Positions 14,958 through 62,641 of a stretch of DNA of 64,000 bases are shown piece by piece. A program made the position numbers and the translations under genes. Positions within the stretch are counted from its first letter, which is position 1, and each line of letters opens with the position of its first letter. A model generated the notes under the pieces. That model was given only the letters and a program-made list of their open reading frames with translations. It had not been told where the DNA came from and ran no database searches. Source of the DNA: Octopus sinensis (Eukaryota); contig NC_043019.1 of NCBI RefSeq assembly GCF_006345805.1, positions 14,445,360 to 14,509,359 on the forward strand, written 5' to 3'.

Positions 14958-16127
14958 TCACAACCATTTTTTTTGCCAGATGGCAGAAAATTTTTCTTTG
15001 TTGATTTGTTTTATTTTTGTATATCTAAAATAAAACACTTTGTTGTCTTTTTGGCTCATCATCATAGCATTTTCACCAAAACCACTTCGGCTTATTATCA
15101 ACGTATCACATTCACTCAGAATATATTGGTCCAAAAACGCCTTCCTTACACCATCACACTTGTTTTTCATCTCCTTACGTGGCCGATCCATATGCATTAT
15201 TCCCCCTGATGTGTACACAATTTGAGGAGAAAATTTTTTAAAAGCTATCGCCTGTACCTCTTCTGAGTCTGTTGTCACAAATATTTTGTACTTGCTTGTG
15301 TTGTACTTATTTAACAAGTTCCAGATAATCTGAATACTTGACATTGAATTCCTTGGGGGATCTCCTGGAACACTAGGGTTCTGTCCCATTCGAATCTGAG
15401 CACACACCAGATGTATATCTGGCCTGGGGATATTGACTTCAAAGAATTTGTCAAATTTTTCCTGTAAATGATCGCTGAAGCGAAACAATAAATTCATCAT
15501 TTTAGCAAATAAATTTCCATATGACATTTTTGATGCCCAATGCAGTTGTTCTTTGTAGCGAGGATTCCGTTTCAAGGCATGAAAATAGATTCGATTTGTT
15601 GTCAGATAGAGGACATCTTCAGGGTAAAGCATTTCTAAGTCTGCTGATTGTAAAGAGGAAATGTACGTATTGTTGTCAACCAAATGAAGGCGACGACTTC
15701 TTAGGCCATGCAACTCTTTTGGGTCAATTGTCCAGTTAATTTTGTTTGGTTGAAGATAATTAGTAAAATTACAAAGTCTTGAAATAATGATGCCAAAACG
15801 ACGACCCATGGCCTGTGCCATTAAATATATAGAAATTATTCCATGCTGTCTATCTCCCCAACCTCCACAACCTCTATGATCAACACAGTAAAAAATAATA
15901 TATTTAGTTTTGTTGTTTAACTGAACCAATTCCTGTTTCTTTTTGCTTACAGTTTTCTTATTTATATGATGCACTTGATTATTTGGAAATTCCTTAGAAT
16001 TATTTATAAACTTTTGGTTGTGTTTGTTTAATGTTGTCCCTGTATATTCTTTATTCACAGAATATTGCTTCCAGGCAAACAGTAGAAAGAAGCTGCTGAC
16101 CACAGCAATGAATCCAAGAACTCGAAT
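14958..16127 (-). CDS. Fucosyltransferase-fold glycosyltransferase (FUT8/NodZ/GT23-like), type II membrane protein, copy c1; large terminal coding exon, start exon not found
   Basis: Open for 389 codons. It has a hydrophobic anchor IRVLGFIAVVSSFFLLFAW, a K/N-rich stem and motifs CGGWGDRQHG, CAQIRMG, KIFVTTDSEEV and DQYILSECDTLIISRSGFG. It begins at a polypyrimidine-TAG acceptor in phase 0. Confidence 0.85.
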   Translation of the reverse strand: MRVLGFIAVVSSFFLLFAWKQYSVNKEYTGTTLNKHNQKFINNSKEFPNNQVHHINKKTVSKKKQELVQLNNKTKYIIFYCVDHRGCGGWGDRQHGIISIYLMAQAMGRRFGIIISRLCNFTNYLQPNKINWTIDPKELHGLRSRRLHLVDNNTYISSLQSADLEMLYPEDVLYLTTNRIYFHALKRNPRYKEQLHWASKMSYGNLFAKMMNLLFRFSDHLQEKFDKFFEVNIPRPDIHLVCAQIRMGQNPSVPGDPPRNSMSSIQIIWNLLNKYNTSKYKIFVTTDSEEVQAIAFKKFSPQIVYTSGGIMHMDRPRKEMKNKCDGVRKAFLDQYILSECDTLIISRSGFGENAMMMSQKDNKVFYFRYTKIKQINKEKFSAIWQKKWL

Positions 16128-16160
16128 CTAGAAATGATAAAAAGAAATAAGTGAAAATAT
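16128..16160 (-). promoter_or_regulatory. 3' splice acceptor of c1 (equivalents end at 37917 and 61474)
   Basis: ttttcacttatttctttttatcatttcTAG|ATT CGA GTT. The TAG is in frame, so the ORF cannot extend upstream unspliced. Confidence 0.7.
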
Positions 16161-16499
16161 GACAACTTTGTAATAAAATACCAGAAACAAATAGAAAAAA
16201 AGTCTTCTACTGCAATTTTTAGTTTTTCAGTTTTTACTAGCTTATAGGTACAGGCATGGCTGTATGGCTAAGGAGTTTGCCTCTCAACCACAAAGTTTCA
16301 GGTTCAGTCCCACTGCATGGCACCTAGGGCAAGGCTCTTCAACTACAGCTTACTTGTCTTCTATTCTATTAATACTATGCATGAGTGTGGGTGTGTGCAT
16401 GTTTATGTCTCCTTATCTTGACAGTGTATGATTATTGTAAATGAATATCCTTCTTCGTTTCCAGTGTTGTGTGAAAATCTGTCTGACCATGGGAAGATG

Positions 16500-16660
16500 C
16501 TGAGCTGGCAGAACTGTTAGCATGCCAGACAAAATGCTTAGCGGTATTTTGTCCGTCTTTACACTCTGAGCTCAAATTCTGCCGACGTTCACTTTAACCT
16601 TCATCCTTTCCGAGTCAATAAAATAAGTACCAGTCATGTACTGAGGTTGATGCATCCAAG
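16500..16660 (+). mobile_element. tRNA-derived SINE, second family (also 23075-23255, 37400-37550, 60840-60990, minus strand)
   Basis: gagctggcagaa..gttagc...aaatgcttagcggtattt...ctgagttcaaatt..gccga.gt...cttt.cctttcatcctttc. Confidence 0.8.
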
Positions 16661-17364
16661 TTCCCCCTCCCCTCAGAAAGGCCTGCCCATTACCATAATT
16701 TAAAGCCAATATGTCTGAATATGGAGAAATACTAAACTGAAACAGATAAGGGTTGGTGACAGGATGGGCACCCAGTCGTAGAAAATCTGCCATGGTAAAT
16801 TTGCTCACCCCATGCAAACATGGAAAAATGATTGTTAAAATTAGACTACCGTCAGACAAAGAATACTTACGACCCATTAATGCCAGCATTTTAATTCAAA
16901 TCATTCTTGTATGCTAGCTAATTCCCTACTTTGGTTAACCATAATTTGGTCTTACCTTAGTAATAGACAATGTATTAGACCATATCCAGACATTCTACTA
17001 CCTAGATCAATTGCAGTTGGATAATTCCCTACATTGTTAACCATAATTTGTTTTCACCTTAGTGATAGATAATCAACAAGACCCTAGTCAAACATTTTGA
17101 CATTTGTGAAAATACATATATGCTGTAGGGAATACGACCATACGTATGGAGCTGGTGACAAATGTCTCCTTTAAAATGCAGCACGGTCGCCCCTAACAAA
17201 ATATGAAAGCCAAATACAGACCCAAAGGAATAAATGAAGGACGACAACCGTTCTACTGTTTGAGAGAGAAAAAGACTTTATTTACAATGTGTACAAAGAG
17301 AGTGTGTGTGTGAGTGCTAGCAAGGTGTAGTGTCTGAATGCATGCGCATAGTATTTGTGACTGA

Positions 17365-17585
17365 GTGTTCGTATCATCATCATCGTTTAACGTCTGCTTT
17401 CCATGCTAGCATGGGTTGGACGATTTTGATTGAGGGCTGGCGAACCAGATGGCTGCTCCAGGCTCCCATCTTGATCTGGCAGAGTTTCTACAGCTGGATG
17501 CCCTTCCTATTGCCAACCGCTCCGAGAGTGTAGTGGGTGCTTTTTACATGCCACCGGCACAGTGGCCAGTCAGGCGGTACTGGCA
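17365..17585 (-). mobile_element. RTE 3'-tail fragment (another at 28172-28600)
   Basis: catcatcatcgtttaacgtc..ttttccatgctagcatgggttg, matching the 3' end of RTE copy A. Confidence 0.8.
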
Positions 17586-17589
17586 ACGA

Positions 17590-18400
17590 CCTCTGAAGCC
17601 CAGGCTATTGCAGTATCTTGTCCTACATCTTGGTGGCAAATTTGGGGTCGTTGGCACTATGCAGTGATGCCCAGTTCTAGTATTTGTGTAACTCTTGATG
17701 CCAAAGTTTGGGACAAGTCCTTCCAGGATCTTCCAGATATATTTATGGCATATCTTTCTCACCTATGCTCTAAGGAATAGAGTCTTAATCTATTGAGTCC
17801 TTCCCAATAGCTTATATGCTGCATAGAGTCGATCTTCTTCGTGTAGCTTCATTGGATTGCCTCAAGTTCTGAGATTAATTTGACCATGGCTGGTGACCAT
17901 ACCTGCGAGCAATAGTCAAAGTGGCTTAGGACAAGTGTCCTCCAGAGGACCATCATGGTTTCCTAATCTCTTGTTCTAAAAGTTTTAAGAATCCATCCGG
18001 TCAGCCGCCTACATTTCATTGCCAATTTAGCAACATGCACATGAAAGGATGCATCATTACTCATGTAAATGTCCGGGTCTTGCACTGACTGTGCCTCAGG
18101 GATTGCAATCCCTCCAGGTCCATGATCGACTTCATCAAAGGCCTTTGCAACGTCGAGATATATCACTTCCACATTTGAGTGGTTGAGCAGTCGTTTCAGC
18201 ACCCAGTCATAGTGTTGTAAAAACTGAGTCAGACAGCTTCTTCCTGGTCAGAAACCATGCTGGGTGTCAGGCAGCAAGTCATTATGCATGTATATATATA
18301 TCTGGAAGATCCTGGAAGGACTTGTCCCAAACTTTGGCATCAAGAGTTACACAAATACTAGAACTGGGCATCACTGCATAGTGCCAACGACCCCAAATGC
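17590..18400 (-). mobile_element. CR1-type LINE RT remnant with a short inverted piece at 18297-18400
   Basis: Peptides IYLDVAKAFDEVDHG, GWILKTFRTRD and IWKILEGLVPNFG. Confidence 0.8.
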
Positions 18401-18659
18401 CTGTACATATTACATGTACATCTATATATATACATCTACACATAAAATACAAAATACAAAGTTATATCTTGATATCGCTAGTGATAACAATACTCAAAAT
18501 ATATAACAGACTGGAATTGTAGGCCCGCCTCTTGCAACTTCGATCAAGTGGATCTTGTCCTCCCTCTTGTATAGAAGTGTACAGCTGCAGCGAAATTCAT
18601 TTTTGGACTTTCTTCTATTGAAGGCATTTTAACAAAAATGCTTCCGTAAAGACGGTGAA

Positions 18660-19360
18660 AATATTGTCAATTTCCCCAAACAGGGACACAATTCAATTTT
18701 TAAACAATAACCAAAGCCCCTTCTCCGAAAGGGGGAGGGTTACGGTTTACAATTATTTAACAAATGCAACATAACAACGTTTCCCTGACGAGGAACCAAC
18801 GAACGTGATTACAATAGTCAAACAATAATAATAATAACAAAAAACCTTTTTAATTTATCCCCATTTATGTGAAACCACTTATTCAAGTTCAAGTCATTGA
18901 TGCAATTTTATACGAATTGCTAATACACACACACACATAATGAGGGTGAAAAATTGAATATTAATTTGATTAATATGAATTGAAAACCATTGGTGTAGCA
19001 TATAAGACCATAGCGGATCTTCTTCTAGCAAAATGGATGTCCACTATTAATGGTTCATCCCTGTTATATAATACTTTCACTTGAATAGTTTCAGTATTAA
19101 AGTGAATGTCTGCATTACAATAGAGAGATGTTTTTGTTTCACTTTTAACACGTAATACCGAAATAGTGGAGAAGATATGATATTGTTGTGGGGTGACCCT
19201 AGAGAAAAAGTTAAAATATCTTTTGGCGATGACATTCCCCGGACCTTAAGTAAGGCATGTGTAAAATTTGAATGAAATTGGTTTTGTAGTTCTCAAGTTT
19301 TAGGGAAACACATAGACAGACAGACAGACACACACACATTCTCAGTTTTATATATAATAT
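18660..19360 (+). mobile_element. Helitron/DINE-1-like non-autonomous repeat
   Basis: The 3' part reads aaatttgaatgaaattggttttgtagttctc...acagacagacagacacacacattctc...tatata, typical of such elements. No ORF. Confidence 0.45.
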
Positions 19361-19839
19361 ATAATGTATATATATGTTTGTGTGTGTTTGTCCCCCCACC
19401 ATTGCTTGACAACTGATGTCGGTTTGTTTACATCCCCATAACGTAGCAGTTCAGCAAACAGAAACTGATAAATAAGTACTAAGTTTTAAAAAAATATATC
19501 CTGGGGTCGATTTGTTTGACTAAAGGCAGTGCTCCAGCATGGCCGCAGTCAAATGACTGAAACAAATAAAAGAATGTGTGTGTGTGTCTTGCATGTGGAA
19601 AAATCAACAATATATTTACTTACTGAGTAAAAACTATTTCCTTGGCAATTCTTCATTATGAAAGTTTCTTACTTAATAACTCGCTGTATTGCGTCTCTTT
19701 CCTTCCAAACTACAGTGAAATGGGTTAACAGACAGCTTCTTTTGTTATCTTAAATGTATAGTTGACTGGTAACTTTTAATCTGAAACACTTGGGCGGATT
19801 TGCTTTTAACTGTTTGCTTTCTTTTGCTTTAGTATGTAT

Positions 19840-20730
19840 GGGCTTTTTGTGTGTTTGTGTGTTGCCACTGTATAATAGAAAAGGCGGTACATGGAGGTGT
19901 CACACCCAGTGACTGGTGTAATGTCATCATAGTCAACTGCTACAAAAGTACAGGCGACACCTTAAATAGAAAAAATATGGAAGTATCAAATTGTTGGATC
20001 AGGTGATGAAAGTCACAGAGAGGGTCAAAGCCCAACTTATCAGGGAGAGAGTTATTCTAGATGAGATGCAGTTTGGTTTTGTGCCAGGGAGAAGCACCAA
20101 CGATGCTATATTCCTGGTAAAGCAACTGCAGGAGAAATACATAGCCAAAGATAAACCTCTGTACTTGGCTTTTGTTGCCTTGGGGAAGACTTTTGACAGG
20201 ATCCCCCGATCCCTTATCTGGTGGTCAATGTGTAAACTAGGAATAGACGAGTGTTTGGTGAGAGCTGTATGATCCATGTACAGGGATACTGTCAATAAGG
20301 TGAGGGTTGGCAATGAGTACTGTGAAGAATTCAGGGTACATGTAGGTGTTCACCAAGGATCAGTCCTCAAATCTCTCTTGTTCATCATAGTCCTCCAGAC
20401 AATAACAGAGGAATTCAAGACAGCCTACCTCTGGGAGCTCCTCTATGTTGATTACTTTGTTCTTATAGTTGAATCACTACCAGAACTAGAGAAGTTTCAG
20501 GTGTGGAAGTAAAGTTTAGAACTGAAGGGCTTTAGAGTTAACCTAGCAAAAACCAAAGTTTTACTATGTAGGAAGGCAGATAAATTACAAATCCCTTCAG
20601 GTAGAAGGCCCAACTCGGTTTTTAGATAAAGCATAGACAGAAACTCTGTAAGATATACCAAGTATAAGCTTTGGACGCATAAGAGGTGCAGCAATATCAG
20701 AGGAAGGTTAACAGGGAAAATAGCTTTCAT
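19840..20730 (+). mobile_element. Degraded RTE RT fragment (copy D; its 5' part is mirrored at 31775-32110)
   Basis: Peptides LLDQVMKVTERV...[10 protein letters not shown] and GVHQGSVL, with many stops. Confidence 0.85.
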
Positions 20731-25149: not shown

Positions 25150-26935
25150 TCTTGCTAGTTTGGGGTTGACCCGCCCACCCACCCCCTCCACACATGCCGG
25201 AAGTTCCTATTCTTTTCATCCCTAGGTTGCTTCCCTTGAAGACTGCAAATGCTCTTTCACCATCCCTACCCCTAGTTTCGACCTAGGTAAGGTAATGATC
25301 ATACAGTGCAAAATATGAATGGGTAGTGTTATGCAGGTTGAATTGAAGGCTACTGTATTACTTGCTCATGAATTCTGCCAAATGCGAGCTTTCTTTTCAG
25401 GTACATGAAGCTACTGTCCACCGACGCAGGGTCTCTAGGGCCCATACCTCCCACACCCTCAGGGTTGGCACCCTCAATGTTGGCACACTGAAAGGTAGGT
25501 CTGGCGAGATAGTTGAGATGCTTGAACGGAGACGTGTGGATATATGTTGTATGCAAGAAGTAAGGTGGAGAGGAGGTTCTGCTAAGTTCCTCACAGGCAA
25601 GGAACACAGGTACAAGATTTTCTGGGCAGGGAACACTGACGGGGTTGGAGGCGTGGGTATACTTATCGCTGAGAAATGGGTAGATAAAGTAATTGAGGTA
25701 ATCAGAGTATGCGACAGAATACTTAAGATTAGATTAGCGCTTCATCATAGTTTAGCAACCATTATATCAGCCTATGCTCCTCAGTCGGGGCTACCTGATG
25801 GACAGAAAGACCGATTCTATGACACTCTACTGCAGACTACCTCGTTGACGAACGACAGAGACCTTCTCTTTGTGGCTGGTGACTTCAATGGTCACGTTGG
25901 ACGACATGCTGGGGGCTTCCACGGCGTACATGGAGGCTATGGCTCTGGTTCCCGCAACGAGGAGGGAACCAGGCTGCTGGAGTTCTGCGATGCAAATAAT
26001 CTTATGATTTGCAACACTAACTTCAGGAAACCTACCAGCCACCTAGTCACCTACCGATCGGGCCAACATACCAGCCAAATTGACTACATCCTTGCCAGGC
26101 AAAGGGAGAGATGGCTACTTATAAATGTCAAAACCTTCCCAGGCGAAGAATGCACCCCACAACATAGACTGGTAGTTAGTGACTTTAGGATCAGGAGTAG
26201 GACAACCAGAAGACGGATCTGAAGAAGAAGGATCTGGAAGCTTAAGGATCCTGTGAATGGACAGAGATTTAGAGACATGTTACTTGAAGCCTTTGACGAA
26301 GTAGAAGGGGATAGTGTATCACATGGGGTAGAGGACAACTGGACGTTTCTAAGGGACAACCTGCTGAGAGCCACTGACCAGATCTGTGGCTGGTGCAAAG
26401 TCCCCTCTCGTCCCAAGGTAACGTGGTGGTGGAACAGTGTCGTAGACAGGGCTATTAGAGAAAAGAGACAGACTTGGAAGCACTGGAAGAATGGTGGTAG
26501 CAGGGAATTGTATCAGACTGCTAAAAGGGAAGCTAGGAGACAGGTCTATCTAGCCAGAGGGGAAGCAGATAAGAAAAAATTTGCCAATGTTCTGCGCCGT
26601 GAGGACCAAAGACTGGAGGTGTTTCGCGTTGCAAGACAGTGTGTGAGAGAGAATTGTGATGTGGTGGGAGAGAAGTGTGTTCGCATGGAAGATGTGTTCG
26701 CATGGAAGATGGTATGTATATCTGTATCTTCCGTGCCGGTGGCACGTAAAAAGCACCCACTACACTCACGGAGTCGTTGTTTTAGGAAGGGCATCCAGCT
26801 GTAGAAACACTGCCAGATCCAGATCAGACTGGAGCCTGGTGCAGCCTCCTGGCTTCCTAGACCCCAGTCGGACCGGCCAACCCATGCCAGCATGGAAAAC
26901 GGACGTTAAACAATGATGATGATGATGATGATGTT
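25150..26935 (+). mobile_element. RTE copy B: 5' region + endonuclease + linker, RT deleted, joined directly to the 3' UTR and (GAT)n tail
   Basis: ORF 25362-26222 has EN motifs (GTLNVGTL, MQEVRW, GDFNGHVG, SQIDYIL). After 26713 the sequence jumps to the 3' UTR (gtggcacgtaaaaagcacc...ggacgttaaacaatgatgatg). Confidence 0.92.
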
Positions 26936-44200: not shown

Positions 44201-44358
44201 CTTTAATCGAGCAATTAGACCCCGGGACTTATTCTTTGTAAGCCCAGTGCTTATTCTTTCGGTCTCTTTTGCCGAACCGCTAAGTGACGGGGACGTAAAC
44301 ACACCAGCATCGGTTGTCAAGCGATGTTGGGGGGACAAACACAGACACACAAACACAT

Positions 44359-44427
<69 letters not shown>

Positions 44428-44982: not shown

Positions 44983-45082
44983 NNNNNNNNNNNNNNNNNN
45001 NNNNNNNNNNNNNNNNNNNNNNNNNNNNNNNNNNNNNNNNNNNNNNNNNNNNNNNNNNNNNNNNNNNNNNNNNNNNNNNNNN
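44983..45082. other. Assembly gap (100 N)
   Basis: A run of exactly 100 N, a typical placeholder of unknown size. Confidence 1.
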
Positions 45083-45715: not shown

Positions 45716-45790
<75 letters not shown>

Positions 45791-45799
<9 letters not shown>

Positions 45800-47826: not shown

Positions 47827-47878
<52 letters not shown>

Positions 47879-49920
47879 CAATTTTTATTTTTATTTATTT
47901 TATTTTATTTTATTATATTTTATTTTTAAGTAATAACACTTATTAATTTATAATTTTTTACTTATATATTATTTAATGGTGGGTCCTGTTAATTATTATA
48001 TATGTATTTGTGCGTCCGCTGATATTTGAATATATATATATGTACTGCGAATGTTTGCATACACATTAAATGTGAATGCACATATGTTTGTTGTTATGCA
48101 CGAGTGTGTTATGTGTGAGTGTGTGTATAGGGATGTGTGGATGTGAATATAGTTTTCCTGGTTTGTTGGTGAGAGGTTGAATAGAAGTGTAATGGTGATG
48201 TAGCGATGTAAGAGTTCAAATGATGTGATGTTTTGTGTATAAAATGTACGGTGTTGTTTTGATTATATATCTTGGAATAGTGGCGTATTTTGACTATTTA
48301 CAATTAATTTCTTATAACTTAATTAATGGAAATTTGTGTTAACTTGGTATGTATGTGTTTATGCGTCCTTTGATAACCAAACATAAACATGTATTTTGTA
48401 TTTTATAATTTGGTAAATGTTTGAGTGGAGGCGTAGTGGAGATATAATGATATGGACATTTTTAGTTCTAAGATAATTTGTTTACGAAAAATACGATGTT
48501 ATTTTAATTATGTAACTTATGATAATTTACATTCTTCATCTAGGTATAAATGTATGTATGATTGCATATACGGATTTATGGACATATGTGAGTGGATCTG
48601 TTTGAAAGCATGTATGTGTGTGTATAGGTGAGCTAGTATCTCTTATGTTATGTTGTGATTTGGTTGTGTATATGAGTATGTGCGCACGTTTGTAAATGTG
48701 CGTGCGCATGTGTATGTTTCCCAGCTAACCAACCGTAAAATAACTATTGTAATTCAAATTTAAAAGTATAGGCCAATCAAATGCATCTGTGGAAATTAAT
48801 ACCATGTAAACAGAATAATTTGACTGCTTGCATGTATGTGCAGATATTTGTGGTATTTTGTTGGTATTTAGTTTTGCTACTATATTGCTAATTATGTGAT
48901 ATATGTATTGTTTTATTAGTAATGATGTTATTAGTAATAAGAATATTGATATTGGTAGCATTATTGTTATTGATAACAGTATTGGTATTAACATTAATGA
49001 CTTTTTGTAAATTAATACAAATTAATATATGTACTGTTTACTATATATATCTGCATTAAGTATGAATATGTCTATGTTCTCTACGTTGTAATATCTTAAT
49101 ATAAAGTTGAAAAATTGTAACATTCAATATAGAACATCTATATGTTTATTGATTTATATTATTTATATTATTATGTATATGTATATGTGTATATATAAGA
49201 GTATGAGTATATGCACTCATATTTATATGTAAATGATTTATTATGGGTATGTACCCATACTTATATAAGTATATATGTAACTTGGTTTATACTTTAGAAT
49301 CTCTGAAGAGGCCTTAAGATATTTTTGTTAATGTCTCATTTATAACTTCATATTGACCTACAATACATGGCTAATATAGGTAAAATGAGACATACTTATC
49401 TGCATGGCCGAAACAGCTATAAGTTATAGTGTATATGTATATTTATATCTTTTTATATTTATTTAGTTATATCCTCTTATAATGATTGTAATTATTGTAC
49501 TGTATAACTCTTTCTTGTACACTGTTTTATTATATATTTTTATGTCTAACCTTAATGTTCTTGTGTAGTGGTTTAATAAAGTATGTGATTCGGTATTATC
49601 TGATAGTTGATGAATGATTTAGATATATTTCTCCATTTTCTTATTTTGTATATATATATATGTGCAACTCGTAAACACCAGTCGTCTTTTTTCTCTTTCC
49701 CTGTTGCCCGCTCTGGGATCTTTCTTTCCTCTCTCTTCCTTCTTTATGTTTCCGACGAAGAGCTCCGCTCGAAACGTCATACCTCCCTGCTTCCATCTCC
49801 TGAGCGCCTTTTAATAATAATACTGTAATTGTTCCTGTTGTTGTTGTTTTTTTTGTTTCCCTTTTGGATTAAAATTATATATATATATATATACATATAT
49901 GTATGTATGTATATATATAT
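45791..49920. repeat. Near-perfect 2.08-kb tandem duplication of AT-rich, possibly Penelope-derived DNA
   Basis: Identical ORFs at offsets of 2080-2081 (46645/48725 and 47526/49607). Only a few 1-bp differences are visible. Confidence 0.92.
47215..47345 (+). ncRNA. Degenerate hammerhead-like motif of the same family as 24121-24240 (duplicate at 49295-49425)
   Basis: CUGAAGA at 47223-47229, GGCC...AUGUCUCAUUU/AAAUGAGACAU...GGCC, then GAAA-C-AGCU-A-U-A (cleavage triplet decayed). Confidence 0.45.
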
Positions 49921-50132
49921 ATTATATATATATATATATAATATATATATATTTACATATATATATATAGTGTGTGTGTGTGCGTATTGTGGAAAGTTTC
50001 TGACCTACCTCATATCACTCTTAGTGTACTGTGACACAACTATTAAGTTGACAATTTTCAGGTCGTTAGCATATCAAGTTGGGAAATACTTGTTGCCACG
50101 ATTCAGAGCATTTCAGGTTTTTGTAATAGTAA

Positions 50133-53100
50133 TGTAGTGTGATGGATGAAGAGGACAACAGAAGGAGAAGGAAATACAAACAGGTCTTACCTCGACGAAG
50201 ATCAGGTCTCTTACCGAACTCGGCACGTCCAGTCGCTTCCTCGTCTCTGCTCAAAAGGCTGGCTTCGTTGATTGCCACACGTGCGTGCTGCTTGACCGCT
50301 TCTGCTTCCCCCCGCACATGCGCCCTCCGGTCTTCCACCAGGCCCCTGCAAGCCCTACTTCCGCCCTCATTTATTTGTCGTCCTCTCCACCGACACCACA
50401 CGCCCCCCTGATCTACAGATCACTGAAACGGCTTTCTCACTCGCTCCCCGCTCCCGAACTCACACCCTAACTGGTTTCATAATCAGCCAACCAGGGAGGA
50501 GGGTGCCGTTCCCTCTGTGGTCGCAGTGCGACCCTAGGACTAGTTCCTGGCATGTTGCTGCTGGCCTCATCATCCTGTCTACTGGTGTTGTTTTCATCTT
50601 GCCCACTGCTGCTGGTCCCATCCCCTGAGGCATGGACAATCCTCCGTATATCCAAAATGTGGCATGGCATACGATCGACCGAGATGTTGTTCTTTGAATT
50701 TACAGAGGTTATTGTCCCCTTTCCCCATCGTGATGTACACCGTGCGTTTGAGGGTTTTACCCAAACTTCTTCCCCAACATGCACGAAGGCGTGCTCTTCC
50801 TCCGCCCCGGGTCGCAAAGACGCAGTACACGGATGCCTTCCCTCATACCTGAATATTGTCCTGTGTGGCACCGACTCTTCAGCCCTCCTGATCTGGGCGA
50901 CATATTGTACCAAAATACAGCCTCCCTTGGTGAAATGTGACCCCTCTCTGCCATGGCCTTGATGGTACGATGATGCCTTTCCACCACCCCATTTCCACTT
51001 GGCCGGTATGCCGCCCTGAAGAAGCGGTTGACCTTCCACCCATCAAGCATTTCTTTCAGCACATCTGAGCGAAATGCAGTGCCATTATCCAGAAGCAGTT
51101 CATCCACGGGGCCTCCTTCCAGGAATATCTCATTCAATACTTTCACAATTTCCTCTGCGGTCCCCGTCTTCATCTCCCTCCATATGGCCAACCGCCCCGA
51201 TTCGCTGTCAACCATTGAGAGATATGTCCCTTGCCGGTAGTGTGTTATGTCCACCGCCAGTCGTTTCCAGTCATGGTCCACTGGAATACTTCCCGCTTCA
51301 TGTACGCCCAGAGCAGGGTCGATGGACTGGCACCTGTCACAACTGCTAACCACTCTGTGCACGCTCTGTCTTGTTACATTGGAGTCATCTTTTCTGGCTA
51401 GGAACAATGTCCTGTCCACACCCATGTGATGCAAGGTATGCAGTCTCCGCAACTCCGAGTTGCTCAGATGGCATACTGCAGCTACAACCTGCTTCGCATC
51501 CTCTGGCACCTGCAACCAGACTCGCTTTACCCTGGTCAGGACGTCTGCCCTGTTCTTCTCGGAAGGCACAAAGATCACGCTCAGCTTCAGATTGAACTCA
51601 GTGGTTAGTTCACGTAGTATTCCCAATCGACGCTTTACCAGCATCTCTGCAGCCCCTTTGGTCCACACCCTCCGCTCATTGGTGATGACTGCTGTCACCC
51701 AACCAAGTACAGTGGCCGAATCAGACCTGATTTCTATGGTGTGCAACCCCACTTTAAGGCTAGGTTCACCCCCTTCAACACGGCATCCAACTCCACCACA
51801 TTGATACGATTGCAGTCATCCTTTTTCCTGAGCCAGGCTGCATCTTCCACCATGACACCTCCCACTTCTAAGACAACCCCTGTTGCGATGCTACTGGCGT
51901 CACACCATACAATCTCGCTCTTTGATTTGGGAACATACCAGCTGCCCCTCACTGGGTCCTCTGCTCCTACTCTGACCAAGACTTCCTGTATCATGTCGAT
52001 CGTCTTCTCCCCCACTCTATCATTCCACTTCACTCCTTCGGCTCGTTTCTTGATAAAGCTACATGCTGTCCGGAGCCAACCTGCAATCGGGTAGTGTCCC
52101 ACCAGCTTCCCACACACAGCAAACAGTTCCCGTCTACTCATGCTGGCGCTCAGTTCAGGGACCTCATTCCCTCGCTGGAACACCAACACGCCGGCCTTGT
52201 CTCTCCATAGCTTGAGGCCCAGTGCAGCACCTCCCTCCATTGCCTCTGGTGGCTTGGCGATCAGTCCAAAACCCTTCAGGTGGCCTATGACCTCCGTTGC
52301 TGGCATTACGGTTTCATCCACCAGAATGTCATCGATGTACGAATTGGTGGCCCTTTTTACTCTGTCCACCTTTCCCAGGATGGCCTTGAGAATTGTTGCC
52401 ATAATCTTTGGCACTGAATTCAGCCTGAACCCCAACCTAGTCAGACAGTACGTCCGGCCCTTATACCTGACAAGCTGGTACTTCCACAATTTCTCAGCCA
52501 CATGCACCTGTAGGTATGCCGACTTCAAATCAACAATCGTGGAGGCCCCTGTCATCTGCCTCCACTCTCGCAAGGTGTCTCCGCAGACATCTGTGACCTC
52601 GCTGCCTGTATGACATGATACGTGGTCATTCAGCTCTCAGAAGTCAAGCACTGGCCTGACCTTATGCTTTGTGGGCTGTATCACTGCCATCAGTGGCAGG
52701 ACTCCGCTCTCTTCTTAATCCCAAGGGATCAATATGCCCTCCTTAATCCACTGCTCCACCTCCCCCTCGAACTCACTTCTGGCATCTCCTTTTAGAGTAT
52801 GCTGATAGCAGCCCACTTTATTCTTTAACATCGGGGGCTCTCCCTTCCAGTGCCATTCCACTGTCCACCTCTTGCCATCAAAGACAGCCCGAAAATCCTG
52901 GTCTTCAATGGTGTGTGCAGCATGCTTTTCCTCACGGTTGTCACCAGTGCATGGTCTCGCCCTACACGGTTTCCCCGCTAACCCAAACATTACACCGGCC
53001 TCGTTAACGGTGACACTTCCCAAGCGGGTGATTGCATCCATCCCCATCACCACGTCAATCTCGTCCACCAAGTGACCAACCACAATTGCTCGCAGCGTCA

Positions 53101-54358
53101 TCTGTATCCCTGCACTACAATCTGGGCATCTGTAATGCCTTCACAGTGTACTTCTCTTCCGTCGACAGCTCTAACACTGCTTTCTCCACTCCATGTCTCT
53201 GCCACTTCTGTAGTCATCAGGGTTATTGTACAGCCCGTGTCCACAAGGGCTCGCAACATCTTCCCCTCCACCAGAATGTCGACCACAGGTAGCGACGATA
53301 AACGCGCCTCTACTGATCCGAAGAGACAACTACTGGCGCAGTAGTCTTCCTCAGTCCGTTTCCCCGCAGACATTCGCTGGCTATATGCCCCGGTTCTCGA
53401 CACCGGTAGCAAATGACCTCAGGCTTGGGTGACTCACAGTCACACACCATGTGCAGACCTTGGCACCGGAAACACTGTCCTTTGAACGGTCGCACACGTT
53501 CTTTCTTCGGCCCCTCTCCGCTGCTCCTAGCTCGGCCACTTTTGGATGTTGCAGTCGCTGCTACCGACGTCGTTCTGCTGCACAAAACTAGTACACGTGC
53601 CCGAGATATGATGTTCACCATCGGCATCGAATGAACGTTCGGAAGCAGCTGTAGCTCAACCGACATGTTGTCGGGAAAGCCAGTCACGAACGCCAACATA
53701 ACTGTCCGTTCCAGCGACCCTCCCTCATAACCCGCCAGTTTAGCCAATCTCCTAAATTCATTGGCAAACACGTCCACCTGTTCCCCAGTCCATCTTGTTC
53801 TACCCAGGCGAGCGTATGCCTCAAACATTCCCTCCGCAAAGGCCTCCATCAACCGGATTTCCACTTTCTCCGTGCTGAGTTGGTCTGTCTCCTCCATCTC
53901 TAGATACAGCGCCAATGCTGGACCATCCCAGTACAGTGGCATGAAGCTCACCAGGTCACTTATACCATGGAGCTTCACCACCAACTTCACTTTCTTCAAC
54001 CAAGAGACTACATCCATGTCGCCACAAGACGGTTTTATCATTTCGTGCGAAATACGGACACTCATCGTTCGTTTTTTTTTTTTTTCTCTTTATGTGCCGA
54101 AATAGCATGTAGTGTGATGGATGAAGAGGACAACAGAAGGAGAAGGAAATACAAACAGGTCTTACCTCGGCGAAGATCAGGTCTCTTACCAAACTTGGCA
54201 CGTCCAGTCGCTTCCTCGTCTCTGCTCAAAACGCTGGCTTCGTTGATCGCCACACGTGCGTGCCTCTTGACCGCTACCGCTTCCCCCCGCACATGCGCCC
54301 TCCAGTCTTCCACCGGGCCCCTGCAAGCCCTACTTCCGCCCTCACCACCGACACCACA
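50133..54358 (-). mobile_element. Complete Ty3/Gypsy family-2 LTR retrotransposon with 5-bp TSD (AGTAA); ORFs disrupted
   Basis: LTRs at 54108-54358 and 50133-50400 (TG...CA on the minus strand), with PPT ggggggcg. AGTAA at 50128-50132 and 54359-54363. Domain order: gag with two zinc knuckles, protease LVDTG, RT YIDDILV, RNaseH WCDAS, integrase LLLDNG...GNGVVER. Confidence 0.95.
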
Positions 54359-54466: not shown

Positions 54467-54853
54467 ATACCTAATTTAAACATACCTATTTTACACATAC
54501 TTAAGGGTTTAAAAAAATTAAAATATAGTTTATTGAATTGAATGTTGATAAAATCATATAAGGGCCTGATGATTGGGGTGGCATCTTGAGAGGGGTTCCA
54601 GGTTTATCTCGCCAAATAAAAAGAATTTTTATTTTTATTTTAAATACCTACTGTTTTATTACTTGGCAACACGTGTTTCATGAGGTACATCCTCGGGTTC
54701 CTAAACTGCTCCGTGTTTCCCTGGAACCCCTCTCAAGATGCCACCCCAATCATCAGGCCCTTATATAGTTTTATCAACATTCAATACAATAAACTATATT
54801 TAATTTTTTTAAACCCTTAAGTATGTGTAAAATAGGTATGTTTAAATTAGGTA
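54467..54853. mobile_element. MITE/foldback with ~135-bp terminal inverted repeats
   Basis: The left arm atacctaatttaaacatacc...gaggggttccagg is the reverse complement of cctggaacccctctc...gtttaaattaggtat. Confidence 0.85.
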
Positions 54854-54877
54854 TGTTTAAATTAGTTTTGCTGGACT

Positions 54878-55895
54878 CTACATATATAGTGTTCCAAATA
54901 AAATTAAATTTACAAAAACTATGTTAATAATATATAGTGTTCCAAATAAAATTAAATTTACAAAAACTATGTTAATAATATATAGTGTTCCAAATAAAAT
55001 TAAATTTACAAAAACTATGTTAATAATATATAGTGTTCCAAATAAAATTAAATTTACAAAAACTATGTTAATAATATATAGTGTTCCAAATAAAATTAAA
55101 TTTACAAAAACTATGTTAATAATATATAGTGTTCCAAATAAAATTAAATTTACAAAAACTATGTTAATAATATATAGTGTTCCAAATAAAATTAAATTTA
55201 GAAACACTATGTTATTAATATATAGTGTTCCAAATAAAATTAAATTTACAAAAACTATGTTAATAATATATAGTGTTCCAAATAAAATTAAATTTACAAA
55301 AACTATGTTAATAATATATAGTGTTCCAAATAAAATTAAATTTAGAAACACTATGTTAATAATATATAGTGTTCCAAATAAAATTAAATTTACAAAAACT
55401 ATGTTAATAATATATAGTGTTCCAAATAAAATTAAATTTAGAAACACTATGTTAATAATATATAGTGTTCCAAATAAAATTAAGTTTACAAATACTATGT
55501 TAATAATATATAGTGGTCCAAATAAAATTAAATTTACAAAAACTATGTTAATAATATATAGTGTTCCAAATAAAATTAAATTTAGAAACACTATGTTAAT
55601 AATATATAGTGTTCCAAATAAAATTAAATTTACAAAAACTATGTTAATAATATATAGTGTTCCAAATAAAATTAAATTTAGAAACACTATGTTAATAATA
55701 TATAGTGTTCCAAATAAAATTAAGTTTACAAATACTATGTTAATAATATATAGTGTTCCAAATAAAATTAAATTTACAAAAACTATGTTAATAATATATA
55801 GTGTTCCAAATAAAATTAAATTTACAAAAACTATGTTAATAATATATAGTGTTCCAAATAAAATTAAATTTACAAATACTATGTTAATAATATAT
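54878..55895. repeat. 48-bp minisatellite, ~21 units
   Basis: Unit atatatagtgttccaaataaaattaaatttacaaaaactatgttaata, with recurrent variants. Confidence 0.97.
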
Positions 55896-56010
55896 AAAAA
55901 ATGTGAATTATATAAAACAGAATAACGTAAGCTTTTACATTTTACTTTTGACAATCTTTTTCTAAAAAGTCAAACCTTTTAAAATTGCATTTTCACATTT
56001 TCTTTCATAT

Positions 56011-56091
<81 letters not shown>

Positions 56092-57150: not shown

Positions 57151-57298
57151 AAAATTATGTAGCAACACCAAATGGCCATGCCCCAGCATGGCCACAGCTC
57201 ATGAGCCGAAACTAGATAAAATAAAAAAATATATATATTACACACATGGGCATGCATACACGTACGCATGCAGACATATGTGCGTATGTATATGTGTA

Positions 57299-57334
<36 letters not shown>

Positions 57335-57396
57335 CATACATATATATGTATATATATACATATATATATATACATATATATACATATATATATATG

Positions 57397-59357
57397 AGAT
57401 GCAGTTTGGGTTTGTCCCAGGGAAAAGCACCACTGATGCTATATTCCTGGTAAGGCAGCTGCAGGAGAAATACCTAGCCAAAGATAAGCCCCTGTACCTG
57501 GCTTTCGTTGACATGGAGAAAGCCTTTGATAGGGTCCCCCGATCCCTCATCTGGTGGTCAATGAGGAAACTTGGGATAGATGAATGGCTGGTGAGGGCTG
57601 TGCAAGCCATGTACAGAGATGCTGTAAGTAAGGTTAGAGTTGGCAGCATGTACACAGAAGAATTCAAGGTAGAGGTTGGGGTCCACCAGGGTTCAGTACT
57701 CAGCCCCCTCCTATTTATCATAGTCCTCCAGGCAATTGTGGAGGAATTCAAGACAGGTTGCCCCTGGGAGCTCCTCTACGCTGACGACCTCGCTCTAATC
57801 GCTGAGTCACTATCAGAACTGGAGGAGAAGTTCCAGGTGTGGAAGGAGGGTTTAGAATCGAGGGGCCTTAGAGTCAACCTAGCTAAAACCAAAGTACTAA
57901 TAAGTAGAAAGTTAGAAAATCCACAAATATCCTCAGGAAGATGGCCCTGCTCGATCTGTAGAAAAGGTGTAGGTAGAAACTCTATAAGATGTACCCAGTG
58001 TAAGCTATGGACACATAAGAGGTGCAGCAATGTCAAAGGTAGGCTAACTGGGAAGATAGTTTTTGTATGTGGCAGATGCTCTGGAGCATTGACCTCCGAA
58101 AATCTGCAGAAAACAACTTCCGTCACTTTCCGGGGGGAAAAACTAGAAGTAGTTGATAGCTTCCACTATCTAGGTGACCAAGTCAGTAGTGGGGGCGGGT
58201 GCGCTGAAAGTGTAACTGCTAGAATAAGAATAGCCTGGGCAAAGTTTAGGGAGCTCTTACCTCTGCTGGTGACTAAAGGCCTCTCGCTCAAAGTAAAAGG
58301 CAGACTGTATGATGCATGTGTACGAACAGCTATGCTACATGGCAGTGAAACATGGGCCGTGACTGCTGAGGACATGTGTAAGCTTGTGAGGAACGAAGCC
58401 AGTATGCTCCGATGGATGTGTAATGTCAGTGTACTTACTCGACAGAGCGTTAGTACCTTGAGAGAAATGTTGTACCTAAGAAGCATCAGTTGTTGTGTGC
58501 AAGAGAGACGATTGCGCTGGTATGGTCATGTGGCGAGAATGGATGAAGATAGGTGTGTGAGAAAGTGCCAATCCCTAGCAGTTGAGGAAACCCGTGGAAG
58601 AGGTAGACCCAGGAAAACCTGGGACGAAGTGGTGAAGCACGACCTTCGGACGTTAGGTCTCACCATGGAAATGACTAGAGACCGAGACCTATGGAAGTAT
58701 GCTGTGCGTGAGAAGACCCGGCAAGACTAGTGAAGCCATAATCCGTGGCCCCTACCTGGGACGTAGTCAGTCCACCTGTGCATACCTTCCTTCTTGTGAC
58801 ACTTGTGAAGACCTGTTGAGGCAAGTGAGAATCGAATCGAATCAAATCAAATCAAATCGAACCAAATCAAAATAGATGAACATCAATGGAATTTGTATCC
58901 TTGTGGTACCAGTGCCGGTGGCACATAAGAAAACCATCCGAACGTGATCGTAGCCAGTACCGCAACGACTGGCCTCCGTGCTGAGGGCACATAACAAACA
59001 CCATCCGAGCGTGGCCGTCCGCCAGCCCCGTCTGGCACCTGTGTCGGTGACACATAAGAAAACACCATCCGAGCGTGGCCGTCAGCCAGCCTCGTCTGGC
59101 ACCTGTGTCGGTGGCACATAAAAAACACCATCTGAGCGTGGCCGTCTGCCAGCCTCGTCTGGTACCTGTGTCGGTGGCACATAAAATCACCCACTACACT
59201 CTCGGAGTGGTTGGCGTTAGGAAGGGCATCCAGTTGTAGAAACACTGCCAGATCTGACTGGCCTGGTGCAGCCTTTGGGCTTGCCAGACCCCAGTTGAAC
59301 CGTCCAACCCATGCTAGCATGGAAAGCGGACGTTAAACGATGATGATGATGATGATG
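57397..59357 (+). mobile_element. 5'-truncated RTE copy C: open RT C-terminal half, 3' UTR minisatellite and (GAT)n tail
   Basis: Open frame from EMQFGFVPG to REKTRQD* (58730). The start of the tracked ORF (57246) lies in a microsatellite. Confidence 0.95.
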
Positions 59358-61159
59358 ATATACGAAAGAAGGTTTGAAAATGCAATTTTTAAAAGATGTT
59401 TATTTACTTTACCGGTCTCACTCTTTGGAAAAAGATTGTCAAAAGTAACATGTAGAAGTTTGGTTGCGTTAATTATTGGTTGTTACAAAATGCTACATTA
59501 CATATATACAGTCTTTGGTAACACGGACATGTTAAGGACATAAGAAAGTTTAACAAGTTCCTCAAAATATTGGGCACAAAAGATTACAACATAAATAATC
59601 ATTCTCAAGAATATGTTAAAGATAGTTTCCAGAAGGAATTATTAAAAAGTTCAGGGGGATATTGGTATTGTATCTGTATATTCAAACATGCACAGAATAT
59701 TATATATACATTCTTTGGTGACAAGAGCATGTTAAGAACATAAAAAAGTTTAACAAGTTCATTGAAATATTGGGCACAAAAGATTACAGTAAATATATTA
59801 TACGTTCTCAAGATAATTTCCAGAAGGAATTATTAAAAAGTTCAGTGGGATATTGGTATACATGCACAGAATATTATGAGTTCAAAAAGGTTTACATTAT
59901 AATAGTAGGGAAGCTAAAACTGATCTGTCCACCATGTTAACATAAAAGAATATTATCTCTTTCAAGGGACACTGTAGGTGTGTTTGGGTGGGGGGAAGGA
60001 GGAGTAATATGGAACTGAAAAGAATTTCTCCCATATGTCTCTCCTTCAAGCATCAATGATTTGGGGGATTGGCTTTAGAGGTCAATATGATTTGAGTGTG
60101 TGTGTCTTTGTGTGTGTGTGTATATAGATATGTGGTGTGAATAGATGTGTCTGTGTGTTTGTAAAATCTGGTAGGATGGTGTGTGTATATGTGTGCCTGT
60201 TTGTGTGTGTGTGTGTGTATGTGTGTGGTTAATGTTTGTTAGTGTGTTGCGTGTGCATTAGTGTGTATGTGTATGTTCTAATCTTTTGTGCCCAATATTT
60301 TAAGGAATGTGTTAAACTTTCTTATGTCCTTAACATGTCCCTGTTACAAATGTCGGTTCACAAATGTCAAAATGTTTGACTAGGGTCTTGTTGATTATCT
60401 ATCACTAGGGTGAAAACAAATTATGGTTAACAATGTAGGGAATTATCCAACTGCAATTGATCTAGGTAGTAGAATGTCTGGATATGGTCTAATACATTGT
60501 CTATTACTAAGGTAAGACCAAATTATGGTTAACCAAAGTAGGGAATTAGCTAGCATACAAGAATGATTTGAATTAAAATGCTGGCATTAATGGGTCGTAA
60601 GTATTCTTATAAACAGCAGAATGTCTGATGGTAGTCTAATTTTAACAATCATTTTTCAATGTTTGCATGGGGTGAGCAAATTTACCATGGCAGATTTTCT
60701 ACGACTGGGTGCCCATCCTGTCACCAACCCTTATCTGTTTCAGTTTAGTATTTCTCCATATTCAGACATATTGGTTTTAAATTATGGTAGAGGGCAGGCC
60801 TTTCTGAGGGAAGGGGGAACTTGGATGCATCAACCCCAGTACATGACTGGTACTTATTTTATTGACTCGCAAAGGATGAAGGTTAAAGTGAACGTCGGCA
60901 GAATTTGAGCTCAGAGTGTAAAGACGGACAAAATACCGCTAAGCATTTTGTCTGGCATGCTAACAGTTCTGCCAGCTCAGCATCTTCCCATGGTCAGACA
61001 GATTTTCACACAACACTGGAAACGAAGAAGGATATTCATTTACAATAATCATACACTGTCAAGATAAGGAGACATAAACATGCACACACCCACACTCATG
61101 CATAGTATTAATATAATAGAAGACAAGTAAGCTGTAGTTGATGAGCCTTGTCCTAGGTG

Positions 61160-61342
61160 CCATGCAGTGGGACTGAACCTGAAACTTTGTGGTTGAGAAG
61201 CAAACTCCTTAGCCATACAACCATGCAGTGGGACTGAACCTGAAACTTTGTGGTTGAGAAGCAAACTCCTTAGCCATACAACCATGCAGTGGGACTGAAC
61301 CTGAAACTTTGTGGTTGAGAAGCAAACTCCTTAGCCATACAG
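61160..61342 (-). repeat. 61-bp SINE head triplicated, specific to copy c3
   Basis: ccatgcagtgggactgaacc...tagccataca starts at 61160, 61221 and 61282. It is single-copy in c1 and c2. Confidence 0.9.
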
Positions 61343-61474
61343 CCATGCCGGTACCTATAAGCTAGTAAAAACTGAAAAACTAAAAATTGCAATAGAAGAC
61401 TTCTTTTCTATTTGTTTATGGTATTTTATTACAAAGTTGTCATATTTTCACTTATTTCTTTTTATCATTTCTAG

Positions 61475-62641
61475 ATTCGAGTTCTTGGATTCATTGCTGT
61501 GGTCAGCATCTTCTTTCTACTGTTTGCCTGGAAGCAATATTCTGTGAATAAAGAATATACAGGGACAACATTAAACAAACACAACCAAAAGTTTATAAAT
61601 AATTCTAAGGAATTTCCAAATAATCAAGTGCATCATATAAATAAGAAAACTGTAAGCAAAAAGAAACAGGAATTGGTTCAGTTAAACAACAAAACTAAAT
61701 ATGTTATTTTTTACTGTTATCCTAAAGGTTGTGGAGGTTGGGCAGATAGGCAGCAAGGAATAATTTCTGTATATTTAATGGCACAGGCCATGGGTCGTCG
61801 TTTTGGCATCATTATTACAAGACTTTGTAATTTTACTAATTATCTTCAACCAAACAAAATTAACTGGACAATTGACCCAAAAGAGTTGCATGGCCTAAGA
61901 AGTCGTCGCCTTTGTTTGCTTCAGAACAATACGTACATTTCCTATTTACAATCAGCAGACTTAGAAATGCTTTACCCTGAAGATGTCCTCTATGTGACAA
62001 CAAATCGAATCTATTTTCACGCCTTGAAACGGAATCCTCGCTACAAAGAACAACTGCATTGGGCATCAAATATGTCATATGGAAATTTATTTGCTAAAAT
62101 GATGAATTTATTGTTTCGCTTCAGCAATGATTTACAGGAAAAATTTGACAAATTCTTTGAAGTCAATATCCCCAAGCCAGATATACATCTGGTGTGTGCT
62201 CAGATTCGAATGGGACAGAACCCTAGTGTTCCAAGAGATCCCCCAAGGAATTCAATGTCAAGTATTCAGATTGTTTGGAACTGGTTAAATAAGTACAACA
62301 CAAGCAAGTACAAAATATTTGTGACAACAGACTCAGAAGAGGTACAGGCGATAGCTTTAAAAAAATTTTCTCCTCAAATTGTGTACACACCAGGGGGAAT
62401 AATACATATGGATCGGCCACGTAAGGAGATGAAAAACAAGTGTGATGGTGTAAGGAAATCGTTTTTGGACCAATATATTCTGAGTGAATGTGATACGTTG
62501 ATAATAAGCCGAAGTGGTTTTGGTGAAAATGCTATAATGATGAGACAAAGAAAAAACAACCTGTTTTATTTTAGAGAAGGAGTAATAAAACGAATCAACA
62601 AAGAAAAATTTTCTCTCAGGTGGTACAAATATTGGACGTGA
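61475..62641 (+). CDS. Fucosyltransferase-fold glycosyltransferase copy c3; intact terminal coding exon, start exon not found
   Basis: Open for 388 codons from the TAG acceptor. It has the same anchor and motifs as c1 (CGGWADRQQG, CAQIRMG, KIFVTTDSEEV, DQYILSECD). Confidence 0.85.
   Translation: MRVLGFIAVVSIFFLLFAWKQYSVNKEYTGTTLNKHNQKFINNSKEFPNNQVHHINKKTVSKKKQELVQLNNKTKYVIFYCYPKGCGGWADRQQGIISVYLMAQAMGRRFGIIITRLCNFTNYLQPNKINWTIDPKELHGLRSRRLCLLQNNTYISYLQSADLEMLYPEDVLYVTTNRIYFHALKRNPRYKEQLHWASNMSYGNLFAKMMNLLFRFSNDLQEKFDKFFEVNIPKPDIHLVCAQIRMGQNPSVPRDPPRNSMSSIQIVWNWLNKYNTSKYKIFVTTDSEEVQAIALKKFSPQIVYTPGGIIHMDRPRKEMKNKCDGVRKSFLDQYILSECDTLIISRSGFGENAIMMRQRKNNLFYFREGVIKRINKEKFSLRWYKYWT

Follow-up and report, generated by a model that had tools for sequence, protein, structure and literature searches.

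Gene copies at the locus

The window examined here is the whole stretch of 64,000 nucleotides (nt) at positions 14445360-14509359 of C23 (NC_043019.1) in Octopus sinensis, and genome searches were made against the 2.72-Gb assembly. The window consists of repeat-rich animal DNA carrying three copies (c1, c2, and c3) of one gene, described in an initial annotation of this DNA as an amplified fucosyltransferase-like family. Two of these copies, c1 and c3, are intact, and the divergence between them, which falls almost entirely on amino acid-changing sites and exceeds that of the flanking DNA, is the subject of this report. The gene copies and the duplicated segments that carry them are as follows.

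14958-16127, minus strand: main coding exon of c1 (LOC118767629), 389 codons and a stop, open frame, intact
19624-19656, minus strand: exon 1 of c1, isoform X2 (MKNCQGNSFYS), followed by a GTAAGT donor; located by six-frame peptide search and matching the RefSeq model (P0009)
32300-32332, plus strand: first coding exon MKNCPRIGFHP, followed by GTAAGT; mirror image of c1 exon 1 (P0011)
37910-39085 (approximate), plus strand: c2, stem interrupted by two 1-nt deletions; KYNTS missing through an in-frame deletion of 15 nt; stop codon lost, giving 7 extra residues
61475-62641, plus strand: main coding exon of c3 (LOC118767630), 388 codons and a stop, open frame, intact
59358-63432, plus strand: duplicated segment of c3 common to c1 and c2, beyond which homology ends (BLAST of the extended region)
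11718-19976, minus strand: c1 arm of a head-to-head inverted duplication (inverted repeats I2, I4-I6, I9, I11, I13, I16, and I18; BLAST)
31980-44982: c2 arm, partner of the c1 arm, running up to an assembly gap
C23:14406052-14407218, outside the window: c0, a further copy of the same type
C23:14440304, 14592924, and 14616822: three copies of a second type (d-type), all with frame disruptions

The product of the c1 main exon is identical to residues 12-400 of XP_036368402/3, and in RefSeq both LOC118767629 and LOC118767630 carry the name "uncharacterized protein". The TAG directly preceding each large exon is the splice acceptor. The exon at 32300-32332 sits in inverted repeat I9 (19575-19976 / 31980-32381, 97% identity) and, judged by its location, is part of c2. 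In RefSeq this exon is instead joined to c3 through a 29-kb first intron that spans c2, transposons, and the gap. Because of its two 1-nt deletions, the 15-nt in-frame deletion, and the lost stop, c2 is probably a pseudogene; its sequence is identical in a second, unplaced contig (C10819).

At least seven copies of the family lie within approximately 211 kb on one chromosome, four of c-type (c0, c1, c2, and c3) and three of d-type, with frame disruptions in four of the seven. More distant paralogs are present on C9 and C29. In O. bimaculoides (L028) a head-to-head pair was found, one gene c-like and the other d-like, at 5987-7135 (minus strand) and 10679-11815 (plus strand). As that species has a single c-like/d-like pair, the amplification in O. 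sinensis is lineage-specific.

Divergence between c1 and c3

Codon-by-codon comparison of the c1 and c3 exons yielded 40 replacement codons, three synonymous codons (AGA/AGG, CAT/CAC, and AAG/AAA), and one codon indel, amounting to 57 nucleotide differences in 1167 nt (4.9%). These are exactly the counts, and the exon divergence of approximately 5%, given in the initial annotation. Two nucleotide changes were present in 17 of the 40 replacement codons. The differences are clustered in codons 81-100, 141-160, and 355-389, while across the anchor and stem (codons 1-75) a single residue differs (S12I), as had also been noted. The previously quoted contrasts at the first catalytic motif (YCVDHRGCGGWGDRQH in c1 vs YCYPK-GCGGWADRQQ in c3) and further downstream (RLHLVDNN vs RLCLLQNN) are likewise present. 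Flanking divergence had been put at approximately 1.5% from seven differences in 480 positions (35641-36120 vs 59371-59850). That stretch pairs the flank of c2, not of c1, with the flank of c3; nonetheless the statement holds, because the true c1 and c3 flanks differ at 27 of 1771 positions (1.52%).

Tests of selection

Maximum-likelihood (ML) analyses used the GY94 codon model with F3x4 frequencies, implemented in our own code; branch and site models were fitted to nine sequences, and site posteriors are naive empirical Bayes rather than Bayes empirical Bayes values. Between c1 and c3 the NG86 method gave 0.060 replacement (dN) and 0.018 synonymous (dS) substitutions per site, and the pairwise ML estimate of their ratio (omega) was 3.6 (p=0.005 against omega=1). 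The corresponding estimates were 2.06 for c0 and c3 (p=0.049) and 1.67 for c0 and c1 (not significant). On the nine-sequence tree, omega was 2.55 on branches of the c-type clade compared to 0.67 on the background (p=0.003 against omega=1), and the clade value was 1.7 (p=0.02) on three alternative topologies that include the clade stem branch. Among individual branches omega reached 4.45 for c3, 2.99 for c1, and 0.81 for c0. By region, the branch test reached significance in the C-terminal tail alone, with an unbounded omega (p=0.0007), and was borderline in the N-terminal domain (2.47, p=0.059).

Replacement divergence between c1 and c3 (5.5-5.8%) is 3.7 times that of the flanks (1.52%; Fisher p=2e-8 to 3e-9), with synonymous sites, at 1.8%, on a par with the flanks. 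When the tail was excluded, replacement divergence was 3.9% vs 1.52% in the flanks (p=0.0008), a 2.6-fold excess in codons 76-354. Site model M2a, which placed about 6-10% of codons at omega of approximately 4.5, was preferred over M1a both for the whole gene (twice the log-likelihood difference, 2dlnL, 54.9, p=1e-12) and for codons 76-354 (2dlnL 34.5, p=3e-8; sites 84, 86, 179, 257, and 323). Several sites hold three or four states among the paralogs, with independent changes on different lineages. Changes that single out one copy among c1, c2, and c3 in codons 76-354 number 28 for c3, 2 for c1, and 6 for c2; c3 is the fastest-evolving copy, and its states are mostly unique and derived with respect to every paralog and to O. 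bimaculoides. The excess of replacement differences is a real observation and more than chance.

Variable sites and the C-terminal tail

The most variable positions are concentrated in the following short stretches.

15870-15887, minus strand: hypervariable five-residue loop, c1 residues 82-86 (VDHRG), with multi-state sites and M2a posteriors of 0.78-0.98
14935-15065, minus strand: hot patch in the c1 tail, codons 355-389 and the first approximately 20 nt of the 3' untranslated region (3'UTR)
about 62535-62665, plus strand: the equivalent tail patch of c3

The loop at residues 82-86 is bracketed by C81 and C87 (conservation of 100% and 98%) and lies directly before GGWGDRQ at the beta1-alpha1 junction; it reads VDHRG in c1, YPK-G in c3, and VSHTV in c0. 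Hot spots adjoin invariant residues at 82-86, at 148-151, and at 179, which is next to N178. Counted from the conserved Arg, Asp, and Ser, sites 255/257 and 319-323 also correspond in spacing to loops A and B of FUT8, which cover the GDP donor. Such positions would fit a substrate-facing location of the hot spots.

In the tail, c1 and c3 differ by 24 replacement and 0 synonymous changes, with approximately 3-4 synonymous changes expected. The patch continues past the stop codon, where five differences occur in the first 20 nt (14935-14957 / 62642-62665), followed by approximately 400 identical nt. Protein-level selection cannot explain the 3'UTR part of the patch, and a pure mutational hot spot does not account for 0 synonymous vs 24 replacement changes. 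Compensated frameshifts were considered as a cause of the tail differences and rejected, the nucleotide alignment consisting of substitutions in register.

Gene conversion among the copies

The closest pair among the copies switches from segment to segment. Copy c2 is a mosaic, c1-like 5' of approximately nt 934 and partly c3-like thereafter (breakpoint permutation p=0.006). Copy c0 diverges from c1 by 3.3% in the exon but by 9% in the 3' flank. The intron end of c3 is 97% identical to that of the d-type sequence d11, while the exons are 83-89% identical, and c0 and c1 match d11 exactly over codons 355-364. Interlocus gene conversion among the copies is thus demonstrable, and it explains the identical anchor and stem. 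With regard to extent, the homology of c0 to c1-c3 covers the exon and only 424 bp of 3' flank, and ends 17 bp before the exon. In the O. bimaculoides pair, the first approximately 80 residues are identical to each other and species-specific, including a 6-residue deletion, and the catalytic domains differ at approximately 10% of nucleotide sites; anchor and stem have thus evolved in concert in this species as well.

Conversion on this scale raises the question of age. The copies could be old paralogs homogenised by conversion, in which case the clustered replacements would be old conversion-resistant islands, preserved by selection or by chance, and the pattern would reflect maintenance and no recent burst. 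Consistent with such a history are the c0 exon, which is far closer to c1 than the flanks are, the patchwork similarity among c1, c2, and c3, the homogenised stem and intron end even between c- and d-types and also within O. bimaculoides, and the confinement of the differences to three tight clusters. Islands of that age should, however, have retained old synonymous differences, and few were seen (4 vs 51-54 replacement differences overall and 0 vs 24 in the tail). The c3 states, moreover, are mostly unique and derived, not old variants held in common. We therefore regard old, homogenised paralogs as an improbable account of the divergence. An unsampled donor for the c3-specific states was also considered and rejected for this assembly, as a DNA search of the genome gave 15 matches, all of them known copies.

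Positive selection and near-neutral decay

The reading that we favour, and hold to be somewhat probable, is positive selection on substrate-facing loops within a young birth-and-death cluster under concerted evolution, clearest in c3. Its main rival is near-neutral decay of redundant young duplicates, whereby weak constraint, chance, the post hoc choice of pair, an A-rich 3' hot patch, and conversion tracts would together produce the pattern.

Several results weigh against selection, and many of them are what near-neutral decay would lead one to expect. In the core (codons 76-354) the branch omega was 1.52 (p=0.26), and 0.56 in the donor-binding half. Comparisons across paralog types and across species already give a baseline omega of 0.8-0.9, which indicates weak constraint overall, and four of the seven local copies are frame-disrupted. 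The last 35 codons hold 24 of approximately 51 replacement differences, about half of the signal, and pseudogene copies (c2 and those of d-type) are hypervariable there as well; given the spread of the patch into the 3'UTR and into pseudogenes, a local mutational cause or an unhomogenised tract is likely there. With codons 355-364 of c0 and c1 matching d11, five to seven of the tail differences represent one conversion event, a d-type tract copied into c0/c1. Likelihood-ratio tests of site models can give false positives under recombination, and pervasive gene conversion means that the single-tree site models may be inflated. Furthermore, only nine sequences were available, and the pair c1/c3 was chosen post hoc in the initial annotation. 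In c0, Arg109, which is invariant in 97% of the family, is replaced by His (R109H), and the c1-c3 differences are spread evenly over codon positions (23/15/17).

Evidence at the transcript level points the same way. Exact look-ups of the 287-residue open reading frames (ORFs) of c1 and c3 in public assemblies, made as a transcript check, found none. Among members of the c-type protein cluster there were no assemblies of public runs (Logan), while the cluster of the conserved paralog has some, and neither literature searches nor the exact look-ups gave transcript or protein evidence for c1 or c3. In addition, a peptide search of the assembled DNA between the gap and 61475 found no first exon belonging to c3 itself.

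Near-neutral decay nevertheless predicts that replacement divergence equals flank divergence, whereas the excess is 3.7-fold overall and 2.6-fold in codons 76-354. Omega exceeded 1 significantly in both pairwise and branch tests, and the tail holds no synonymous change beside its 24 replacements. The same sites changed repeatedly in different lineages, adjacent to invariant residues, and under pure decay both 389-codon frames would have stayed open with a rough probability of 0.05 x 0.17, or approximately 0.01. In light of these results, near-neutral decay is judged possible but unlikely. The strong diversifying selection on acceptor specificity proposed in the initial annotation is thus upheld in part: omega remained above 1 with more sequences (2.55 and 1.7 for the clade), while the core by itself was not significant, the tail patch spills into the 3'UTR and pseudogenes, the baseline is high, and conversion is at work.

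Under positive selection, the cluster may have evolved as follows. A lineage-specific cluster of single-large-exon genes, four copies of which are frame-disrupted, evolves by birth and death, its products being putative Golgi-type II GT-B enzymes of the GDP-fucose fucosyltransferase superfamily. Frequent conversion leaves little difference among the copies at the intron end, in the anchor and stem, at synonymous sites, and in the near flanks. Intact copies, c3 most of all, have gained replacements above the neutral rate at a few positions beside invariant residues. Diversifying selection on substrate-facing loops could in this way lead paralogs to make or prefer different fucosylated glycans.

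Assembly gap and the position of c3

A break in the assembly separates c3 from the other copies.

44983-45082: assembly gap (run of N) between c2 and c3, intergenic or intronic, in repeat-rich non-coding DNA

The gap lies outside every coding exon, and no reading frame is therefore affected. On the left it is bordered by the terminus of the c1/c2 inverted duplication (11718-11938 pairs with 44762-44982), and on the right by a dispersed repeat, of which dozens of copies occur (75-85% identity). No contig in the assembly bridges the gap, so the order and orientation of c3 relative to c1 and c2 come from scaffolding alone. The sole other contig that reaches the gap is C10819 (50,987 bp), which duplicates window positions -5994 to 44982 at 99.65-99.9% identity and stops at the exact base where the gap begins. 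It shows 63 mismatches to the scaffold, 25 of them around c1 (13.5-17.6 kb), where many 1-nt indels also occur; five substitutions fall inside the c1 exon, all non-synonymous. Considering the many single-base indels and the 99.65-99.9% identity to the scaffold contig, C10819 was not used as an independent c1 allele.

An assembly artefact might be suspected: c3 could represent the second haplotype of c1 or c2, set in tandem with it, or the sequences of the copies could be consensus mixtures drawn from reads of different paralogs. Pointing that way are the unbridged gap that parts c3 from c1/c2 and a redundant contig that differs from the scaffold mainly around c1 and with many 1-nt indels. Only approximately 4 kb of c3 (59358-63432) is shared with c1 and c2, however, and the DNA beyond, over a further 10 kb, is unrelated, which excludes collinear haplotypes. 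Moreover, c1 and c2 occur together on both contigs. The c1-c3 differences consist of substitutions and one in-frame codon indel, unlike the homopolymer indels of consensus error, and an artefact would carry no bias toward replacement sites. An artefact is accordingly most improbable. Copy c3 is thus a real paralog and not a misplaced haplotype, its homology to c1/c2 being confined to 59358-63432 and absent from the following 10 kb.

Predicted fold and family membership

An AlphaFold2 model built from a 104-sequence alignment had a mean predicted local distance difference test score (pLDDT) of 89.5 and a predicted template modelling score (pTM) of 0.83; an earlier model from an 8-sequence alignment (pLDDT 37.6) was useless. 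The model opens with the helix of the membrane anchor (residues 2-30), passes through a stem (29-56) in which pLDDT falls below 50, and from residue 76 forms a confidently predicted body of two Rossmann domains. The predicted layout is that of a type II membrane protein, with a short N-terminal tail, one hydrophobic anchor, a disordered stem, and the catalytic domain; the N-terminus consists of 11 residues from exon 1 followed by IRVLGFIAVVSSFFLLFAW. By this layout the c-type products are type II membrane proteins, putatively of the Golgi.

Comparison of the model with the PDB using Foldseek gave as matches AtFUT1 (GT37; E=2e-12), FUT8 and NodZ (GT23; approximately 1e-10), and POFUT2/1 (approximately 1e-6). 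Fucosyltransferases made up 50 of the 50 PDB matches listed, with 53 matches at E<=0.001. R246, D333, and S348 are spaced 87/15, compared to 88/16 for R365, D453, and S469 of FUT8, an equivalence of donor sites drawn from motif spacing and not from superposition. A structural study (bioRxiv 10.1101/2020.02.14.949818) reports that these three FUT8 residues are conserved in every fucosyltransferase whose structure is known. In the octopus family, conservation is 97% for R246 and 94% for S348, while D333 occurs in most (64%) of the distant relatives and does not vary among octopods. The equivalent of FUT8 H363, part of the HxR motif, is Gln in octopods and His in the majority (69%) of the family. 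Conservation of R246, D287, H312, and S348 across the family ranges from 94 to 97%, and intact copies keep nearly all near-invariant family residues, the exceptions being R109H in c0 and L271W in c3. At residue 271 (approximately 62285-62287 in c3) the family has Phe in 97% of members, the c-type Leu, and c3 Trp, so that an aromatic residue was regained.

A profile search recovered 1600 relatives at E<=0.001, of which the named ones are uncharacterised mollusc proteins (Haliotis, Aplysia, Arion, Argonauta, and Octopus). No Pfam family matched c1 or c2 at E<=1, and c3 gave a spurious match alone; a sequence-profile search of the PDB returned no match to any solved structure. With respect to CAZy family GT23, relatives reached 20.5 bits for FUT8_N_cat (cut-off 27.6) and 13.6 bits for NodZ (cut-off 28.3), and for GT37 relatives alone reached 14.5-16.7 bits for XG_FTase (cut-off 23.4). 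Assignment to GT23 or GT37 is thus not supported, while a fucosyltransferase-like identity at the superfamily level (GT-B, GT11/23/37/65/68) is well supported by the predicted structure. The c-type products may, on the strength of the model, transfer fucose from GDP-fucose.

The initial description of the genes as fucosyltransferase-like agrees with these results, in that the confident model matches GT-B fucosyltransferases alone among the matches listed and places an Arg/Asp/Ser triad at FUT8-like spacing. Its further statement that the family cannot be assigned to a described gene did not stand, since the genes are LOC118767629 and LOC118767630 and UniProt labels the O. bimaculoides relatives "GT23 domain-containing", a name quoted here as the source gives it. 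Several molluscs have members of the family, which is uncharacterised and lacks a Pfam model. Literature searches on the LOC identifiers, on octopus fucosyltransferases, and on animal GT37-like enzymes found nothing relevant.

Repeats and mobile elements in the window

A long terminal repeat (LTR) retrotransposon occupies 50132-54343 on the minus strand. Its LTRs are 237 bp long (50132-50368 and 54107-54343), and between them lie a zinc-knuckle gag, reverse transcriptase/RNase H, and integrase. A truncated copy of this element is present at 34425-35497, upstream of c2, which suggests that the c2/c3 duplication probably included the element. Two satellite arrays were found: an AT-rich array with a 2.08-kb period right after the gap (45727-49872), and a 48-bp repeat of approximately 27 copies (54738-56045) that reads as a long artificial ORF. 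Non-LTR fragments of long interspersed nuclear elements (LINEs) occur at 3-2381, 7854-9682, 25347-26804, and 57225-58730, with ORFs for AP-endonuclease and reverse transcriptase and, in some cases, a PHD finger; the non-LTR copies at 7837-8960 and 57627-58750 share 88% identity.

Significance and comparison with known systems

Mollusc glycans are unusually fucose-rich, and to our knowledge the enzymes that build the fucosylated ones are mostly unknown. The cluster described here indicates that the fucosyltransferase superfamily has an uncharacterised branch extending across molluscs. Short loops that evolve faster than neutral DNA are candidate residues for setting acceptor specificity, and the cluster offers a natural system for the interplay of gene conversion and selection in young families. 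The hot spots may face the acceptor, and the enzymes might have a role in recognition. A more far-reaching and doubtful proposal is that of a glycan-diversification system, in which duplication and patchy conversion would shuffle the Cys-bracketed loop and the variable C-terminal hairpin/helix among paralogs, leaving individuals or lineages with different fucosylated epitopes on their surface or in mucus; pathogens, symbionts, or gamete recognition would be the driving force. If true, the cluster would parallel, in an invertebrate, the histo-blood-group loci of vertebrates, within a family for which no Pfam model or characterised member was found. If the copies are expressed and differ in specificity, they would open a way to study glycan-based recognition in cephalopods; otherwise they would serve as a warning that a 3'-end hot patch together with concerted evolution can mimic strong positive selection.

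Among enzymes of known function, GT23 (FUT8 and NodZ) resembles the octopus proteins in its GT-B match (E of approximately 1e-10), in a near-equal Arg/Asp/Ser spacing, and, for FUT8, in the type II layout. Unlike GT23, the octopus proteins have no Pfam FUT8_N_cat or NodZ match, no coiled-coil or SH3 domain, and Gln in place of the HxR His; the TM-score is approximately 0.45, with no sequence-profile match to solved structures. AtFUT1 of GT37 is the best structural match (E=2e-12, TM-score 0.52-0.56), and relatives show weak XG_FTase matches, but the sequences are 14-18% identical, the plant enzymes exceed the octopus proteins in size, and every match falls short of the family threshold. POFUT1 and POFUT2 (GT65/GT68) share the superfamily fold (E of approximately 1e-6) and the three-motif donor site, while the match is weaker and POFUTs are soluble enzymes of the endoplasmic reticulum encoded by conserved single-copy genes.

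At the level of the locus, the case is one of rapidly evolving tandem glycosyltransferase paralogs, a kind already known, in an enzyme family that is uncharacterised. The vertebrate ABO/GGTA1 and FUT1/2/Sec1 clusters combine tandem paralogs, pseudogenes, gene conversion, and substrate-site replacements that alter glycan products. They belong to GT6 and GT11, with known products and known pathogen-driven selection, unlike the octopus cluster, which represents another glycosyltransferase family and is known here from its sequence alone. In its tandem paralogs, its pseudogenes, and the conversion among its copies, the octopus cluster is nevertheless like these vertebrate loci as they are generally described.

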